Of a DNA stretch of 63,805 bases, positions 25,455 through 53,681 are shown piece after piece. The translations under genes were made by a program, and so were the position numbers. The notes below the pieces were generated by a model that saw only the letters and a list, made by a program, of their open reading frames with translations, did no database searches and was not told the DNA's origin. Position 1 is the stretch's first letter, and each line of letters starts with the position of its first letter. Source of the stretch: Hausera hauseri (lineage: Eukaryota); the NCBI GenBank assembly GCA_046269625.1, contig JBJURY010000012.1:196-64000 (forward strand), written 5' to 3'.

Positions 25455-25526
25455 TGTAAGATAGAGCAGTAGCAGCTCATCGGGCTCATAATCCGAAGGT
25501 CATAGGTTCAAATCCTATTCTTATAA
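25455..25526 (+). tRNA. Initiator tRNA-fMet(CAU)
   Basis: TCGGG-CT CAT AA-TCCGA AGGTC and GAGC/GCTC D-stem, typical of initiator tRNA. Confidence 0.9.
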
Positions 25527-25604: not shown

Positions 25605-26645
25605 ATGACCGGAAACAGTTTAGGTGACTTATTTAGAATTACTACTTTTGGAGAATCTCATGGTAAATTAATTGGTTGTATTATCGATGGTTGTCCTTCA
25701 GGTATTAAAATTAATATAAAAGATATGCAAGGATATATTAATACTAGAAGACCAGGTATAAATAAATTTGTTACTCAAAGAAAGGAATTAGATAAAATAA
25801 ATATAGTTTCAGGTATTTTAAATAATGTTACTACGGGTACACCTATATCTATTATAGTATTTAATAGAGATTATAAAAGTAAAGATTATAATAATTTAAT
25901 AAATATATTTAGACCCGGTCATGCTGATTATACCTATTTTAAAAAATTTAATATAAGAGACTATAGAGGTGGAGGAAGGTCATCAGCACGAACAACTGTA
26001 TCAATTGTAATTGCCGGTTATATAGCTAAGAAACTTCTTAAAGAATTATTTAATATAAATATATTTAGTTATATTTATAGTATAGGAAAATTTAATATAC
26101 AATTAAAAGGTAATCTTATTGATTTTTATAATAAAAATAATTATTATTTAAAAAAGTATTTAAATTATATTAGAAAATCCGGTAATTCTGTAGGAGCATC
26201 TATTTGTATAAATATAAATGGTATATTCCCAGGGATAGGTGAACCAATATTCGATAAGTTGGATGTTAAATTATCCCAATCACTAATTGGAATAAATGCG
26301 GTAAAAGGTATTGAAATTGGTAATGGAATAAATTCTTCTAAATCTTATGGTATAGATTTTAATGACGAAATATATAATAAGGGGTTTAAAAAAGATAATT
26401 CAGGTGGTATATTAGGGGGTATTTCCAATGGTCAAGATATAAATTTTAAGATACATATTAAACCTACTTCTAGTATTATAAGAGAACAAAACACTGTAAC
26501 AAAAAATATTCATCAAAAAAAAATAAAGGTAATTGGTAGACATGATCCATGTGTAGGATTAAGAGCTTGCTCTATATTAGAATCAATTACATCAATTGTT
26601 CTAATTGATTTAATACTAAAACACAAAGCCAGATTATTTATATAG
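25605..26645 (+). CDS. aroC: Chorismate synthase
   Basis: TTFGESHG, RPGHAD, RGGGRSSAR, GRHDPCV. Confidence 0.98.
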   Translation: MTGNSLGDLFRITTFGESHGKLIGCIIDGCPSGIKINIKDMQGYINTRRPGINKFVTQRKELDKINIVSGILNNVTTGTPISIIVFNRDYKSKDYNNLINIFRPGHADYTYFKKFNIRDYRGGGRSSARTTVSIVIAGYIAKKLLKELFNINIFSYIYSIGKFNIQLKGNLIDFYNKNNYYLKKYLNYIRKSGNSVGASICININGIFPGIGEPIFDKLDVKLSQSLIGINAVKGIEIGNGINSSKSYGIDFNDEIYNKGFKKDNSGGILGGISNGQDINFKIHIKPTSSIIREQNTVTKNIHQKKIKVIGRHDPCVGLRACSILESITSIVLIDLILKHKARLFI

Positions 26646-26714
26646 ATTTGTATCTTAATGGTAAAGTATTACTTTAACACAGTAATTTAATCGGTTCAAT
26701 TCCGTTCAAATCTA
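26644..26714 (+). tRNA. tRNA-Val with AAC anticodon
   Basis: AGATTTG/CAAATCT acceptor; TTACT-TT AAC AC-AGTAA; CGG TTCAATT CCG. Confidence 0.85.
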
Positions 26715-26721
26715 AATAACT

Positions 26722-34700: not shown

Positions 34701-34704
34701 ATTA

Positions 34705-34777
34705 AATAACTAACAAGATTCGAACTTGTAACATCTAATTCGTATTTAGAAAACTTTTTCCATTAAGCTATAGTTAT
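34705..34777 (-). tRNA. tRNA-Arg(ACG)
   Basis: TCTAA-AT ACG AA-TTAGA; ACAAG TTCGAAT CTTGT. Confidence 0.87.
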
Positions 34778-34784
34778 TTAGCTA

Positions 34785-48148: not shown

Positions 48149-48233
48149 AAGAGAAAAAGGGATTCGAACCCTTGATGAATATTTTCATAAATGATTTCTA
48201 ATCAAACGACTTAGACCACTCATCCATTTCTCA
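48149..48233 (-). tRNA. tRNA-Ser with AGA anticodon
   Basis: Ser-type D arm GAT GAGTGGTCTAA GTC; TGA-TT AGA AA-TCA; long variable arm ATGAA..TTCAT; AAGGG TTCGAAT CCCTT. Confidence 0.82.
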
Positions 48234-48234
48234 A

Positions 48235-48307
48235 TACGAGAAAAAGGACTTGAACCTTTAAAATATAGATCCTAAATCTACCATGTCTACCATTTCATCA
48301 CTCTCGA
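48235..48307 (-). tRNA. tRNA-Leu(UAG), short variable region
   Basis: ATG AAATGGTAGA CAT D arm; GTAGA-TT TAG GA-TCTAT; 5-nt variable loop; A73. Confidence 0.85.
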
Positions 48308-51277
48308 CCTATATCTAAACTTAGGAGAATAATTATCAATATATCTTTTAATAAAAAAAATTCTAGTAACAAAAAAAAATTTTTTAACAAAATAAAAAAC
48401 ATAAACTATATCATCTGTAATTACTTTAATATTTTTAAATTTAAATAAAATAAAAGTCTTAATATGATTTTCCCCTTTCAGAATAATACTAAAATAATTA
48501 CTAAATTCCTTGACAGAAATAACAATTCCATAAAAAACAGGACTAAAAAAAATATCAAATCTTTTAAATAAAATAAGAGGATTAATAGAAAAAAAGAAAC
48601 CTAACAATTTTTTTTCCATAATTAAATAACAATATTTATTTAATCTACAAGTACAAATAAGATTAGCATCATCAACAAATTGTTCTAACTTATTAAAATA
48701 TTTATCTAATTCAAAAAACAATTTTTCTTTGCACTTTGTTAAATTATTAAATGCGCCCAAAAATATTAAAGATTTAATAACTCTATAATTAACAAGTCTT
48801 TTATTAATTCTCAGGTAAAAATCTCTAAAATTATAAAATTTTCTAATCTGTCTTGCCCTTAAAATTTCATTAAAAGAAGATATTCCTAAACCTTTTATAA
48901 CATTAAAACCAAAAATAATACAATTCTTACTCAATATAAAAAAATTATAATAAGATAAATTAATCTCTACAGATAAAACTAACACCTTCTTTCTTCTAGA
49001 TTCATTAATTAACCCTTCAATTTTAATAGGATTATTATAATAACAATTAATACAATTAACAATAAAACAAGTAAAAAAATTATACTTTAGCCAAAGCATA
49101 TAATAAGTAATTAAAGAATAAGAGGTGGCGTGTGATTTATTGAAACTATAACCAATAGATTTAGATAAAAGATTAAAAATTAAAATAGATTTATTTTTAC
49201 TAAACACATTACATGATAAGAAATACTTTTTTTCTAAAGTAATATATAATTCACTACCTTTAGCTAAATTTTTTCTAAATCTATCAGCTCTATTATAACT
49301 ATAATTAAATATCTTCTTTAATATTTCTAACACTTGTTCCTGATAAATAATAATACCATTAGTATCATTCAAAATATAATCAATACCTTTATCATTAAAA
49401 TCAGATACTAATACCTTTTTTCTTTTCCTTAAAATATATTCACTAATTAGATTAATAGGACCTGGACGATATAAAGATATTATATCAACTATATCTTTAA
49501 AACAATTTATATTAATTCTATAAAGTAACCTTTTCAAACCTGTACCTTCTAATTGAAATATTCCACAAGTATAACCTGTATTTATTAAAGAATACATACC
49601 TCTACTATTTAAAGGTAATTCAAAAAAATTTGCATTAATATTACTTTTTTTCTTAATAATGTATATAAGAGATAAAGCAGTTAAACCTAACAAATCTATT
49701 TTTATTATCTTTAATTTTTCTATATCTTGTTTATCATATTGAGTAACAAAAATATTATTTTTTCTAATATAAAACAGTGGTAAAAAATTTTTTCCTTCTA
49801 AAATAACAATACCAGCTGCATGTATACCTATATTTTTAACTAAACCTTCAACTTTTAGCGCACAAGAAAGAATCTTCTTTGACAAATTATTATTTAAAAA
49901 ACTAATATCTCTATTATTACTTAGAATATTTGATATACTTTTATCATTTTTATTATAATCAGAAAAATAAGTTGATAAATTATCAACATAATTATATCTG
50001 ATGCCTAATATCCTTCCAGTATCCCTTATAGAAGACTTAGGTGAAAATCTATTATAAGTAACTATATTAACTACTTTATTAATTCTAAAACTATCCTTAA
50101 CATATTTAACTACCTTATCTCTACTAAACTGACAAATATCAATATCAAAATCTGGATAGGTATCCATTTCAAAATTAAGAAATCTTTCAAATATAAGTTT
50201 ATAACTAATAGGATCAACTTGAGTGATCCTTAAAATATAAGATATTAAAGAACTAGAACAAGAACCCCTACCTGGACCTATTTGAATATCATTAAATCTA
50301 GACCAACATAATATTTTGTAAACTATTAAAAAATATTTAGAATAATTCATTAAAAAAATAACTTTTAATTCACTAAGTAATCTAATATAATAAATAAAAA
50401 AATTATATTTAAAAAATTTTCTAAACCTATAACTTAGAATGCTAAAAAGTTTAAAATCTAAATTTGTAATTCTTGAATTTACTTTTAAATCAAAAATATT
50501 AAAATTACACTTTATACTTAAATTTTTTAAATTTAATAAAGTAAAAGGAATATCAGAAAAAACAGAAATAAATTTCTTTTTTGAAATAAAAGAAAAATTA
50601 TCAAAAAAAGATCTTAAAAAACTACATTCACTAATATACTTCTTATTAAGAATACAATATTTATAAATATAACTATAAAAATCGAAACGATCTACAAATC
50701 TAACAATACAAGTTGCGACCATTGGAATACCTAATAAATAAGATAAAATAATAAATCTATCAGTAAAATAATAAGATATCTTTGTATTTCTTTGTGCTTC
50801 AAAATAAAAGAATTTCAATTTATTTATTAAACTTAAAACTATACATTTTATAATAAAATTACTCTTATAAATAATATTTTTTAGTATACCACTATCAGAA
50901 CCGGATAAAAAAAATATCCCTTTTACATTACTACTATTAAACCACTTAAATTTAAAAATAAGTACATTTTTTTTTGAATAATATTCCCAAGACTTATTTA
51001 ATATTCTACACAAATTCCTATAACCAATTTTATTCTTAACATACAAAGTAATATTACCGTTAATAATATAATTATAATATAAAAATATCTCACAACCAAT
51101 AATAGGTTTAATATTATATTTAATACAAGTAATAAAAAATTTAATAGCACCAGAAATACTAAAATAATCAACTAAAGTACAATACTTTTGTCCATCTTTC
51201 TTAACCACTTTCAAAAGTTTTTCAAAATTAATAACTCCAAATTTAAGATTGTATTCAGAACAAACTTTATAATTCAT
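48287..51277 (-). CDS. dnaE: DNA polymerase III alpha subunit
   Basis: KPIIGCE, GPGRGS, FERFLN, PDFDID, HAAG, KIDLLGL, FQLE, YSFNKSHA. Confidence 0.97.
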   Translation of the reverse strand: MNYKVCSEYNLKFGVINFEKLLKVVKKDGQKYCTLVDYFSISGAIKFFITCIKYNIKPIIGCEIFLYYNYIINGNITLYVKNKIGYRNLCRILNKSWEYYSKKNVLIFKFKWFNSSNVKGIFFLSGSDSGILKNIIYKSNFIIKCIVLSLINKLKFFYFEAQRNTKISYYFTDRFIILSYLLGIPMVATCIVRFVDRFDFYSYIYKYCILNKKYISECSFLRSFFDNFSFISKKKFISVFSDIPFTLLNLKNLSIKCNFNIFDLKVNSRITNLDFKLFSILSYRFRKFFKYNFFIYYIRLLSELKVIFLMNYSKYFLIVYKILCWSRFNDIQIGPGRGSCSSSLISYILRITQVDPISYKLIFERFLNFEMDTYPDFDIDICQFSRDKVVKYVKDSFRINKVVNIVTYNRFSPKSSIRDTGRILGIRYNYVDNLSTYFSDYNKNDKSISNILSNNRDISFLNNNLSKKILSCALKVEGLVKNIGIHAAGIVILEGKNFLPLFYIRKNNIFVTQYDKQDIEKLKIIKIDLLGLTALSLIYIIKKKSNINANFFELPLNSRGMYSLINTGYTCGIFQLEGTGLKRLLYRININCFKDIVDIISLYRPGPINLISEYILRKRKKVLVSDFNDKGIDYILNDTNGIIIYQEQVLEILKKIFNYSYNRADRFRKNLAKGSELYITLEKKYFLSCNVFSKNKSILIFNLLSKSIGYSFNKSHATSYSLITYYMLWLKYNFFTCFIVNCINCYYNNPIKIEGLINESRRKKVLVLSVEINLSYYNFFILSKNCIIFGFNVIKGLGISSFNEILRARQIRKFYNFRDFYLRINKRLVNYRVIKSLIFLGAFNNLTKCKEKLFFELDKYFNKLEQFVDDANLICTCRLNKYCYLIMEKKLLGFFFSINPLILFKRFDIFFSPVFYGIVISVKEFSNYFSIILKGENHIKTFILFKFKNIKVITDDIVYVFYFVKKFFFVTRIFFIKRYIDNYSPKFRYRSRVMKW

Positions 51278-51278
51278 A

Positions 51279-51491
51279 TAGGCCGTAATGGATTTGAACC
51301 AATGACCTAAGGATTATGCAAAAGGACTATTTCATAATATTAAAAATATTTTTCCCGTATAGTCTCTACACAATGAATATATAAATATATAAAATTAGCA
51401 CGAAATACGTTAGCTCCTTCGATTTAGAGAAAATTTACTTCAATAAGTAACCCAATAAAGTCCATTGCTCTACCAACTGAGCTAACGGCCT
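51279..51491 (-). tRNA. tRNA-Ile2(CAU), ileX-like, interrupted by an intron (exons 51491-51459 and 51318-51279)
   Basis: Joined exons give AGGCCGT TA GCTC AGTTGGTA GAGC A ATGGA CT|CAT AA TCCTT AGGTC ATTGG TTCAAAT CCATT ACGGCCT A; position downstream of rpoD matches ileX. Confidence 0.85.
51319..51458 (-). ncRNA. Group I intron, 140 nt
   Basis: Exon ends in U and intron ends in G; R element GTAGAGACTATA, S element ATGAAATAGTCC; P1, P2, P3, P4, P7 and P8 pairings visible. Confidence 0.88.
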
Positions 51492-52756
51492 TAAAAATAA
51501 AAATTTAAAAAAAAAGACCTACTAGGATGCTTTAACTTATTTAAAACCTTAAACTCTATTTGTCTAATTCTTTCCCTAGTTACATTAAATATTCTACCTA
51601 TATTCTCCAAAGTATATTTCTTACAATTTTTATTTAAACCGTAACGCATTCTAACTATCTTTTCCTCCTTTTTTCCTAAAGAGGAAAGAATACTATTAAG
51701 TTTAACTCTTAAATCAAAATAATATTCTTCTCTATCTAAAACACAATCATTATTACCATAACTCACATCTCCAAAACTAGCAATATGTTCTTCTAGAGAT
51801 GTTGGGTTTCCAATATTTTCCAAGACGTATTTCAACTTACAAGCTCTACCAACATCTTTATATCCTATTTTTCCGCGTTTGTCAAGTCTGTCTCCTTTTA
51901 TATAAGAAATATATTCCAAAACATGTACAGGTATATGAATAATCTTATATTTATAAGAAATATATCTAGTAACAGCTTGTATAATCCACCAAGTAGCATA
52001 GGTAGAAAATCTAAAACCTTTAGAATAACTAAACTTATCAACAGCCTTTATTAACCCTAAATAACCTTCTTGTAATAAGTCAGGAAACAAACTATTTAAA
52101 TTAGAATATCTTTTAATTATGGAAACTATCAATCTATAATTGGATTTAACTATTACTTTTTTTAATAATTTATAAAAAACTTTTCTTCTAACTAAAGCAA
52201 TATAATCTTTTTTAAAATTAAATATATTAATTTTATTCAAAATTAAAAAAAGTAAATTCTTATAGAAATATAAAAGATAATATCTAGAAGAAAAAATAAA
52301 AAAAGATAAAAAAAGAAAATTAACATTATAAATATTTAACAAATTAAACTTAAATTTTAAATCATAAAAATTAACCATACCTTTTAAAATAATAGTCTCA
52401 TTATAGAAAAAATTAATAAAATAATTAAAATATTTATCAAAAAACTCTAATATTAAATATTTAATATTAATAATATTTATTATTTTAAAAAAAAAAATTA
52501 TATTTTTAATCCTATAAATATTATTAATAATATTATTAATAATATAATTGAATATACCTAACAAATAAATAATATCAATATTTTTAATGTTCATACTAAT
52601 AAAATACTTTTTTAAATAAATATACGATAATATTTTCTTTTTCATTTTTATAACTAGAAAATCATATTTTAAATATAGTAAAATTATTCTATCAATATTA
52701 TAATCAAAAAGCTTAGTAATATTATTTTTCTCACCTCTATTTAATAAATTTTTCAT
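51491..52756 (-). CDS. rpoD: RNA polymerase sigma factor RpoD
   Basis: DLLQEG.LGL.KAVDKF, FSTYATWWI.QA, TLE.IG..FNVTRERIRQIE, KLKHPSRS. Confidence 0.97.
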   Translation of the reverse strand: MKNLLNRGEKNNITKLFDYNIDRIILLYLKYDFLVIKMKKKILSYIYLKKYFISMNIKNIDIIYLLGIFNYIINNIINNIYRIKNIIFFFKIINIINIKYLILEFFDKYFNYFINFFYNETIILKGMVNFYDLKFKFNLLNIYNVNFLFLSFFIFSSRYYLLYFYKNLLFLILNKINIFNFKKDYIALVRRKVFYKLLKKVIVKSNYRLIVSIIKRYSNLNSLFPDLLQEGYLGLIKAVDKFSYSKGFRFSTYATWWIIQAVTRYISYKYKIIHIPVHVLEYISYIKGDRLDKRGKIGYKDVGRACKLKYVLENIGNPTSLEEHIASFGDVSYGNNDCVLDREEYYFDLRVKLNSILSSLGKKEEKIVRMRYGLNKNCKKYTLENIGRIFNVTRERIRQIEFKVLNKLKHPSRSFFLNFYF

Positions 52757-52757
52757 G

Positions 52758-53681
52758 TTAATTAAAATTAATTCTTAATAAATATTCTATTCTAAATAAA
52801 TTTATTTTGTTAAATAAATAAAAATAATTACAAAAAAAATATTTTTTAAAATAACGTTTAAAAGTAAAACAATTATTTATTAAAATATATTCTTCTAAAG
52901 TAATACTACTATTTATTTTATTAAAAAATAAATGTATATCTTTACTAATTAAGGAACTGGGGTCGCTAGTATGTAAAAAAATAAAATGGATATAATATTT
53001 TTTTTTTAAAAGATACCTATAATATTTAATAACAATATTTCTATAGGATAATTTACCGGGATCATCGCCATCAAATAAAAAAAAAATATTATCACTAAAA
53101 CCAAGAATACGTTTTAACTGTAAAAAACTCAGAAAACATCCTAATATAGAAACAACGTTTTTAATACCTATTTTAAACATACTTAATAAATCAAAACATC
53201 CTTCAACAACATATAAATATTTTTTTTTAATAATACTTTTAATATTATCATAAATATAATATAAATAATTTAACTTATTAAAATAAAAATTACTTTTAGT
53301 AAAAACATATCTTAATTTAGAATTTTTATATATCGATCTACCTATAAATCCTATAATATTATTATTACTAAACAATGGTATTACTAACTTATTGGACAGT
53401 AAAAATAAATTTCCTAACTTACTAAAATGTATTAAATGTTTCATATTATCAACATATTTATTTTTAAAAATACTAATATTAAATCCATTACAATAACCTA
53501 GGGAAAACTTTTTTATAATATAATAAAAACATAAACCTCTATTATGTAAAAACAATAAAGCGTCGCAACTATTAAACAACCTACAAAAAAATATATTATT
53601 TAGTTTTCTATTTACAGACAATATTTTTCTCTTTCTTTTATACTTATAAAAAATTTTTTTATAACCATACCATTTCATCAT
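52758..53681 (-). CDS. dnaG: DNA primase (catalytic core only)
   Basis: LHNRGL, FSLGY, IIGFIGR, VVEGCFD, FDGDDPG, DP; upstream of rpoD. Confidence 0.9.
   Translation of the reverse strand: MMKWYGYKKIFYKYKRKRKILSVNRKLNNIFFCRLFNSCDALLFLHNRGLCFYYIIKKFSLGYCNGFNISIFKNKYVDNMKHLIHFSKLGNLFLLSNKLVIPLFSNNNIIGFIGRSIYKNSKLRYVFTKSNFYFNKLNYLYYIYDNIKSIIKKKYLYVVEGCFDLLSMFKIGIKNVVSILGCFLSFLQLKRILGFSDNIFFLFDGDDPGKLSYRNIVIKYYRYLLKKKYYIHFIFLHTSDPSSLISKDIHLFFNKINSSITLEEYILINNCFTFKRYFKKYFFCNYFYLFNKINLFRIEYLLRINFN

Follow-up and report, generated by a model that had tools for sequence, protein, structure and literature searches.

A strongly reduced IC3-type group I intron predicted in the tRNA-Ile2(CAU) gene of a Candidatus Vidania genome

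Group I introns in tRNA genes are textbook ribozymes, and the 205-nt intron of Azoarcus is their usual minimal model. In the Hausera hauseri assembly, a tRNA(CAU) gene is divided by an insert of 140 nt, which raises the questions of whether this insert is a group I intron, which tRNA it interrupts, and whether an RNA of this size should still be spliced. The window that we analysed is a stretch of 63,805 nucleotides, equal to bases 196-64000 of contig C12, from an assembly of 868 Mb in 909,086 contigs. The whole contig has 107,996 bp with a G+C content of 20.1% and zero N, and carries an rRNA operon at its end. Its end falls within the 23S rRNA gene, so the contig may lack a small piece of the genome.

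The genome was placed through DnaE (48287..51277, minus strand; NCBIfam), which is shortened here to 996 aa. In an exhaustive HMMER search, the closest protein was DnaE of Candidatus Vidania fulgoroideorum with 47% identity, followed by matches of 38-41%; the DnaE proteins of Zinderia and Nasuia were among the next matches, and the public Vidania genomes in the list measure 104-136 kb. Since the nearest DnaE matches are those of Vidania, we assigned the contig to this lineage, and a coherent Vidania gene order runs along it. A homologue search with the RpoD protein retrieved distant sigma factors only, and no Vidania. Judged by these gene comparisons, C12 is Candidatus Vidania, a planthopper nutritional symbiont derived from betaproteobacteria with a genome of ~108 kb.

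When introns were allowed, ARAGORN placed on the complement strand a tRNA(cat) that folds into a normal cloverleaf of 73 nt once an intron of 140 nt is removed, the insertion lying at position 33-34 (ggact-Intron-cataa). On the minus strand of the window, the 5' exon (A1-U33) occupies 51459..51491, the intron, which follows U33 and has G as its last base, 51319..51458, and the 3' exon (C34 to A73), beginning with the anticodon CAU, 51279..51318. The sequence-only reading had proposed exactly such a split, between U33 and CAU by a 140-nt insert ending in G, and both ARAGORN and direct reading of the letters agree with it to the base. The split gene went undetected by default ARAGORN and by the Rfam tRNA scan. 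Within the insert lies the 12-mer GTAGAGACTATA, which occurs a single time in the window.

A CAU anticodon can belong to an initiator, an elongator tRNA-Met or tRNA-Ile2, and these are told apart by bases outside the anticodon: G3/C70, C4-G69 and C5-G68 discriminate Ile2 from Met and fMet, and A11-U24 and G12-C23 mark fMet (Silva et al. 2006, PMC1635315). As read from the sequence and by ARAGORN, the acceptor stem of the split tRNA comprises A1 G2 G3 C4 C5 G6 U7 and A66 C67 G68 G69 C70 C71 U72, with GCUC/GAGC as D stem. By the published criteria (PMC1635315), G3-C70 rules out both Met and fMet, Ile2 typically shows C4-G69 and C5-G68, and A11-U24 is lacking. The neighbourhood points the same way. 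E. coli K-12 has the order rpsU-dnaG-rpoD-mug-ileX, and C12 matches it with dnaG (52758-53681), rpoD (51491..52756, minus strand) and the tRNA(CAU) gene directly downstream of rpoD, both protein genes being identified with NCBIfam. Over the aligned parts of both exons, the tRNA is also ~80% identical to E. coli ileX. The acceptor-stem discriminators and the rpoD-ileX synteny thus uphold the earlier naming of the host, and on these sequence criteria the split tRNA is tRNA-Ile2(CAU), present in a single copy on the contig.

The gene is wedged between its neighbours. Position A1 is the final base of the rpoD stop codon, the dnaE ATG follows 2 nt after A73, with dnaE directly downstream, and CCA is not encoded. 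Given this extreme packing (window 51275-51493), we propose that the tRNA-Ile2 gene is transcribed together with dnaG, rpoD and dnaE, and the pre-tRNA would therefore have to be cut from a dnaG-rpoD-tRNA-dnaE transcript.

Demand for this tRNA should be high. Counted over 85 long ORFs, AUA ranks third among the codons with 94 per 1000, which bears out the earlier impression that ATA codons abound, and UUA ranks fifth with 64 per 1000. An intact tilS is found on the contig, scoring 142.7 bits on TIGR02432 where the cut-off is 93.6, and ileS is also present. To our knowledge, TilS has no substrate other than tRNA-Ile2. In a whole-contig ARAGORN scan, the sole other CAU tRNA (25455..25526, plus strand) was of the initiator (fMet) type, as marked by A11-U24, G12-C23 and G29G30G31/U39C40C41, so that no alternative AUA reader is seen on the contig. 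A low-score ARAGORN 'tRNA-Ile(aat)' was rejected as an AUA reader, being located inside an ORF and having no Rfam support. The same whole-contig scan of the 108 kb yielded no tRNA-Ala and no elongator tRNA-Met, and metG had no match of its own on the contig, just a cross-hit on the ileS frame. The earlier suggestion that splicing would be essential holds up as probable. It is favoured by the sole AUA reader on the contig, the common codon and the retention of tilS and ileS; it is weakened by the missing tRNA-Ala, elongator tRNA-Met and metG, which make import of translation parts plausible and keep the essentiality argument from being watertight.

Turning to the nature of the insert, we compared the 501-nt neighbourhood with 4,227 Rfam families. 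The top family was Intron_gpI (RF00028) with 15.9 bits and an E value of 0.13, and its alignment covers P3, the P7 strands AGACUA and UAGUC, and P8. The group I assignment made earlier thus found its family as the best match, but with a score that lies far under the RF00028 gathering score of 50, a shortfall explained by the deletions affecting P5, P8 and P9.

The contig holds a second intron of the same design. ARAGORN with introns allowed located a tRNA-Leu(UAA) gene with a 144-nt group I intron at C12:71378-71601 (= L002:7378-7601, intron L002:7413-7556). It lies 20 kb from the CAU intron, at the classical U34/A35 site and with the classical UUUGAGUGC guide, and the two reduced introns thereby sit in the tRNAs for AUA and UUA, which are among the most-used codons. 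Both carry UGUGUAGAGACUAUA..GGAAAA..GA(A/U)AUAGUCC, and the strings TGTGTAGAGACTATA and ATAGTCC are the same in both and in the wider family described below. Their guides track their exons, with GGUU/GACU in the CAU intron and GAGU/ACUU in the Leu intron, each at the canonical guide position. The Leu intron has neither P8 nor P9, its 3' tail AGAUAG resembles the canonical AGA...UAAG minus the stem-loops, and it gave no RF00028 match at E values up to 10. The two Vidania introns are nearest each other, at 66% identity over shared columns, but shared A+T drift confounds this value, so we draw no inference as to whether one descended from the other.

From both introns we built a 21-nt core pattern and scanned it over public metagenome contigs, where it hit at least 120 loci. 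Among the matches listed, ARAGORN set the boundaries of 33 distinct tRNA introns, which are 181-360 nt long and hosted by tRNAs for Leu(UAA), Leu(CAA), Arg(UCU, UCG, CCU), fMet, Asn, Asp, Thr, Ser, Gln, Glu and Ile(UAU). The RF00028 gathering score was passed by 13 of 19 tested loci (54-86 bits), and compensatory changes are abundant in P2, P3, P4, P6 and P8 of the metagenomic tRNA introns. A covariance model, R1, was trained on 19 metagenomic introns only, with the Vidania sequences left out. On the Vidania contig, R1 gave two matches only, the CAU intron with 45.8 bits (E 2.7e-10, covering 16-161 of the 206 model positions) and the Leu intron with 47 bits, scores that are partly circular because the 19 training introns had been selected with 21 Vidania-derived bases. 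Over the whole 868-Mb assembly, the model returned the same two introns and nothing else. Outside the search-pattern columns, the CAU intron matches 17 of 28 family-conserved positions, and the misses fall mostly in the deleted P5 and P9. Short local R1 matches at the metagenome loci L055, L076, L100, L019 and L074 belong to larger introns whose P9 regions are divergent, mostly outside tRNA genes, and were rejected as additional mini-introns.

Against this family, the anatomy of the CAU intron can be followed element by element along the minus strand. The sequence-only reading had drawn P1, P2, P3, P4, P7 with its bulged A, and P8, and a pairing script found standard pairs only in all of these helices. 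The guide region (51449..51458) forms P1, in which intron GGUU (7-10) faces exon G30-A31-C32-U33, with U33.G7 at the splice site followed by C32-G8, A31-U9 and G30.U10. According to the script, this P1 of 4 bp keeps the distance from the 5' end found in canonical relatives, whose P1 has 3-5 bp. In the same region, intron 1-6, UUAU(U)G, is able to pair with the 3' exon CAUAA as a possible P10, read from the sequence. The P2 hairpin ACUU-AUUG-AAGU (intron 11-14/19-22; 51437..51448; script) can be extended to 9-24 (51450-51435), and its L2 loop, AUUG, is of non-GNRA type, where canonical relatives have GAAA or GUAA. P3 joins the 5' strand UUUUCUC (intron 26-32; 51427..51433) to the 3' strand GGGAAAA (intron 103-109; 51356-51350), as found by script and R1; R1 aligned it with zero non-standard pairs, and P3 covaries strongly among the metagenomic family.

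Script and R1 likewise agree on P4, CGAAG/UUUCG (intron 38-42/54-58; 51401..51421), which encloses an 11-nt remnant of J4/5-P5-J5/4 with 2 possible P5 pairs. Two P4 pairs are double-changed relative to the family consensus, from G-C to A-U and from U-A to A-U, with pairing kept. The conserved GCUAA leader precedes P6, UAAU/AUUG (intron 62-65/85-88), and P6a, AUAUA/UAUAU (intron 69-73/78-82), both drawn by script within 51371..51397. J6/7, the P7 5' strand G(A)GACUA and J7/3 (51357..51370) are the same as the family core UGUGUAGAGACUAUAC; this P7 strand holds the bulged A together with the G-C pair of the guanosine pocket. P7 itself pairs G93(A94)G95-A99 with U130-C135. Family identity extends to UGUGUAGAGACUA and GAAAUAGUCC and to A35, U37, C38, G39, A44, C57, G58, C61 and A63. 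P8 is reduced to a mini-hairpin of 5 bp, AUAUU-UUU-AAUAU (intron 110-114/118-122; 51337..51349; script and R1); in the joint alignment, the P8 hairpins of canonical relatives are much larger.

The 3' part, assigned by joint alignment and R1 (51319..51336), consists of J8/7 UAUGAAA, the P7 3' strand UAGUCC, a UUUU linker and the terminal G140. P9.0/P9 is absent from the CAU intron, which after P7 has just UUUU and the terminal G; in the joint alignment, canonical relatives continue after UAGUCC with 28-66 nt, typically 45-60 nt, of P9.0/P9 stem and GAAA-capped hairpin. The earlier reading had already noted a missing P9 and a vestigial P5, and the sequence, the joint alignment and the end of the R1 match at position 161 of 206 confirm both. 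As the GNRA loop of P2, nearly all of P5, and P9 are lost, both known IC3 docking contacts, the tetraloop-receptor pairs L2-P8 and L9-P5, are missing from the CAU intron, along with both GNRA tetraloops. Taken together, the anatomy, the top Rfam family, the sister intron and the metagenomic relatives support what was first proposed by eye, and by these comparisons the insert is a genuine, strongly reduced homologue of IC3-type group I introns.

We next consider how this intron relates to known ones. The Azoarcus tRNA-Ile(CAU) intron is an IC3 intron of 205 nt with P2-P9 and P9.0 (PMC13168695). Its 5' exon runs up to and includes the anticodon CAU (PMC2241849), which puts the insertion after position 36 and agrees with the sequence-only reading. 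Both systems have a tRNA-Ile(CAU) host, betaproteobacterial descent and a compact IC3 intron in the anticodon loop, and the core string GUGUAGAGACUA...AUAGUCC of the canonical relatives is the IC3 core. In contrast to the 205-nt Azoarcus intron after the anticodon, the Vidania intron comprises 140 nt, stands before the anticodon at U33/C34, lacks P9/P9.0 and GNRA loops and keeps only a remnant of P5. Reviews place bacterial tRNA group I introns only in cyanobacteria, alpha- and betaproteobacteria (PMC4033280; PMC3984707). Canonical tRNA introns and the Vidania pair share the core, the length and position of P1, the J3/4-P4 string AAUxCG, GCUAA before P6, and J8/7. Whereas the canonical relatives listed span 181-360 nt with P5, a large P8 and P9 hairpins of 45-60 nt, the Vidania introns have 140 and 144 nt.

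The insertion site has precedents in a different tRNA. A group I intron type in the initiator tRNA-fMet(CAU) is described from cyanobacteria, and two of the metagenomic introns, L012 (217 nt) and L126 (219 nt), interrupt initiator tRNA-fMet(CAU) at U33/C34, so that the site as such is not new. These introns share with the Vidania intron the same site and the same guide design, UUUG|GGCU versus UUAUUG|GGUU, and the change from exon G31 in L012 and L126, where the guide GGCU faces exon GGCU, to A31 in Vidania is matched by a change from C to U in the guide. The hosts of L012 and L126, however, are initiators with a 1-72 mismatch and an A11-U24 D stem, and their introns are full-sized with P9, whereas the Vidania host is Ile2. 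It is the U33/C34 insertion in an Ile2 tRNA that is new.

The size claim needs a narrower wording. Degenerate group I introns of 56-81 nt, keeping only P1, P7 and P10, are known from fungal SSU rDNA (Phialophora, Arthonia, Porpidia; PMC3160393). They resemble the 140-nt Vidania intron in being natural group I introns with far fewer than 200 nt, but are nuclear IC1 derivatives without P3-P6 and P8, while the Vidania intron is bacterial and has the whole P3-P7 and P4-P6 core. The earlier proposal that this may be among the smallest natural group I ribozymes therefore holds for introns with the full P3-P7/P4-P6 core, given relatives listed at 181 nt or more and Azoarcus at 205, but not for group I introns at large, given the fungal 56-81 nt (PMC3160393). 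Within our searches, the Vidania pair are the smallest bacterial group I introns with a complete core. A literature search retrieved no paper that connects Vidania, Nasuia or Zinderia with group I introns, and as far as the literature searched extends, no nutritional symbiont of an insect had been noted to carry such introns before.

Stability calculations do not by themselves recover the group I fold. For the CAU intron, the nested group I helices amount to -4.5 kcal/mol versus -20.4 for the minimum free energy (MFE) structure, plain MFE folding did not return the group I fold, and the sequence is no more stable than its shuffles (z = -0.09). The MFE structure of the Leu intron contains P2, P3, P4 and P5. 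With P9/P9.0, nearly all of P5 and both GNRA tetraloops lost, and with helices that are A-U-rich, we judge it somewhat likelier that folding of the CAU intron in the cell needs general RNA chaperones, or some other protein of symbiont or host, than that it is fully autonomous. The stronger proposal, that the 140-nt RNA and its 144-nt sister without P8 are autonomous ribozymes, self-splicing without P9/P9.0, with almost no P5 and with no tetraloop-receptor contacts, appears rather doubtful to us.

We predict from the sequence that the group I pathway most likely removes the CAU intron in vivo, yielding the only AUA-reading tRNA, and we hold this outcome, in which we infer both the splicing and its catalysis by RNA, to be quite probable. 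Along this route, the guide GGUU would form P1 with exon G30-U33 and so place the U33.G7 wobble at the splice site, and an external guanosine, bound at the P7 pair G95-C134 beside the bulged A94, would attack after U33. The terminal G140 would next occupy the guanosine pocket, UUAU(U)G would hold the 3' exon CAUAA in P10, and U33 would be joined to C34. TilS would then turn C34 into lysidine, and IleRS would charge the tRNA for AUA.

A weak group I fold energy and an Rfam score under threshold are also what one might see if the intron had become too reduced to splice, leaving tRNA-Ile2 as a pseudogene and AUA to be read by an imported host tRNA or otherwise; tRNA-Ala, elongator tRNA-Met and metG are already gone, so some import is plausible. 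We nevertheless regard such decay as improbable. The catalytic core has stayed letter-perfect despite 20% G+C and a fast-evolving genome, the guides match their exons, and both exons form an intact cloverleaf. The intact tilS and the rank of AUA as third commonest codon also argue against a dead gene, as does the same reduction in tRNA-Leu(UAA), the reader of the fifth commonest codon.

The loss of peripheral elements and the low predicted stability would equally suit an insert excised by a protein endonuclease and ligase, of host or symbiont origin, with the group I-like core acting only as a folding scaffold, and nutritional symbionts do receive host proteins. However, we know of no bacterial protein-only tRNA splicing pathway. 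The features that have been kept, namely the U.G wobble, the terminal G, the bulged-A guanosine pocket, J8/7 and J6/7, suit ribozyme chemistry and are not those of a bulge-helix-bulge substrate, which makes protein excision very unlikely. As to a chance likeness or an assembly artefact, with unrelated tRNA halves joined or junk inserted, nothing specific speaks for it, although the assembly is highly fragmented (909,086 contigs). This idea is effectively refuted by a 108-kb contig without N and with coherent Vidania gene order, by halves that make one cloverleaf, by the R1 match (E 2.7e-10, partly circular as explained above), and by the intron of the same design in a second tRNA.

The locus has a wider bearing. 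In this symbiont, the IC3 scaffold has been cut naturally to 140 and 144 nt with an unchanged catalytic core, providing a ready-made deletion series that bears on the role of the periphery and on the smallest working group I fold. This genome, among the smallest cellular ones, retains both introns, in tRNAs that read the codons ranking third and fifth in its usage; either ribozymes have been trapped there and become essential, or RNA folding has passed to proteins of host or symbiont, as it has in organelles. Should the 140-nt intron prove autonomous, no self-sufficient group I ribozyme with a complete core would be smaller, and essential tRNAs in a genome of 108 kb would have kept two selfish-looking introns for as long as this ancient symbiosis has lasted. 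There is also a consequence for annotation. Published Vidania annotations report 24-25 tRNAs, determined by tRNAscan-SE (PMC10333215). Because intron-blind tRNA finders miss both split genes, these counts of 24-25 may be too low, and where Ile2 or Leu(UAA) tRNAs seem to be 'missing' from tiny genomes, split genes may likewise lie hidden.

The searches yielded several further observations. Dense arrays of 10-25 tRNA genes on the metagenome contigs L116, L043, L053, L041 and L040 include tRNAs split by IC3 introns, and Ser(UGA) and a tRNA with a UCA anticodon are further IC3-split hosts among the metagenome matches listed. The metagenomic IC3 host tRNAs listed far exceed the four classical cases. 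In the assembly itself, at least 24 further RF00028 matches exceed the gathering score, with 52-117 bits and lengths of 240-330 nt, mostly on short contigs (for example C333269, C8468 and C47010); these presumably stem from fungal, plastid or other non-insect DNA. A public metagenome-assembled genome of Flavobacteriaceae, CBDCKV010000001.1, measures 108,882 bp, has a Flavobacteria S16 leader and encodes a DnaE 27% identical to that of C12; a search of public genome contigs with the C12 DnaE retrieved this locus and no other. It appears to be another extremely reduced symbiont, unrelated to C12, and the contig may represent its entire genome. Finally, four tRNAs of C12 have A34 anticodons, Val-AAC (window 26643-26715), Ser-AGA (48149-48233), Arg-ACG (34704-34778) and Thr-AGU (L004:6828-6901), a wobble set that is eukaryote-like and unusual for a bacterium.
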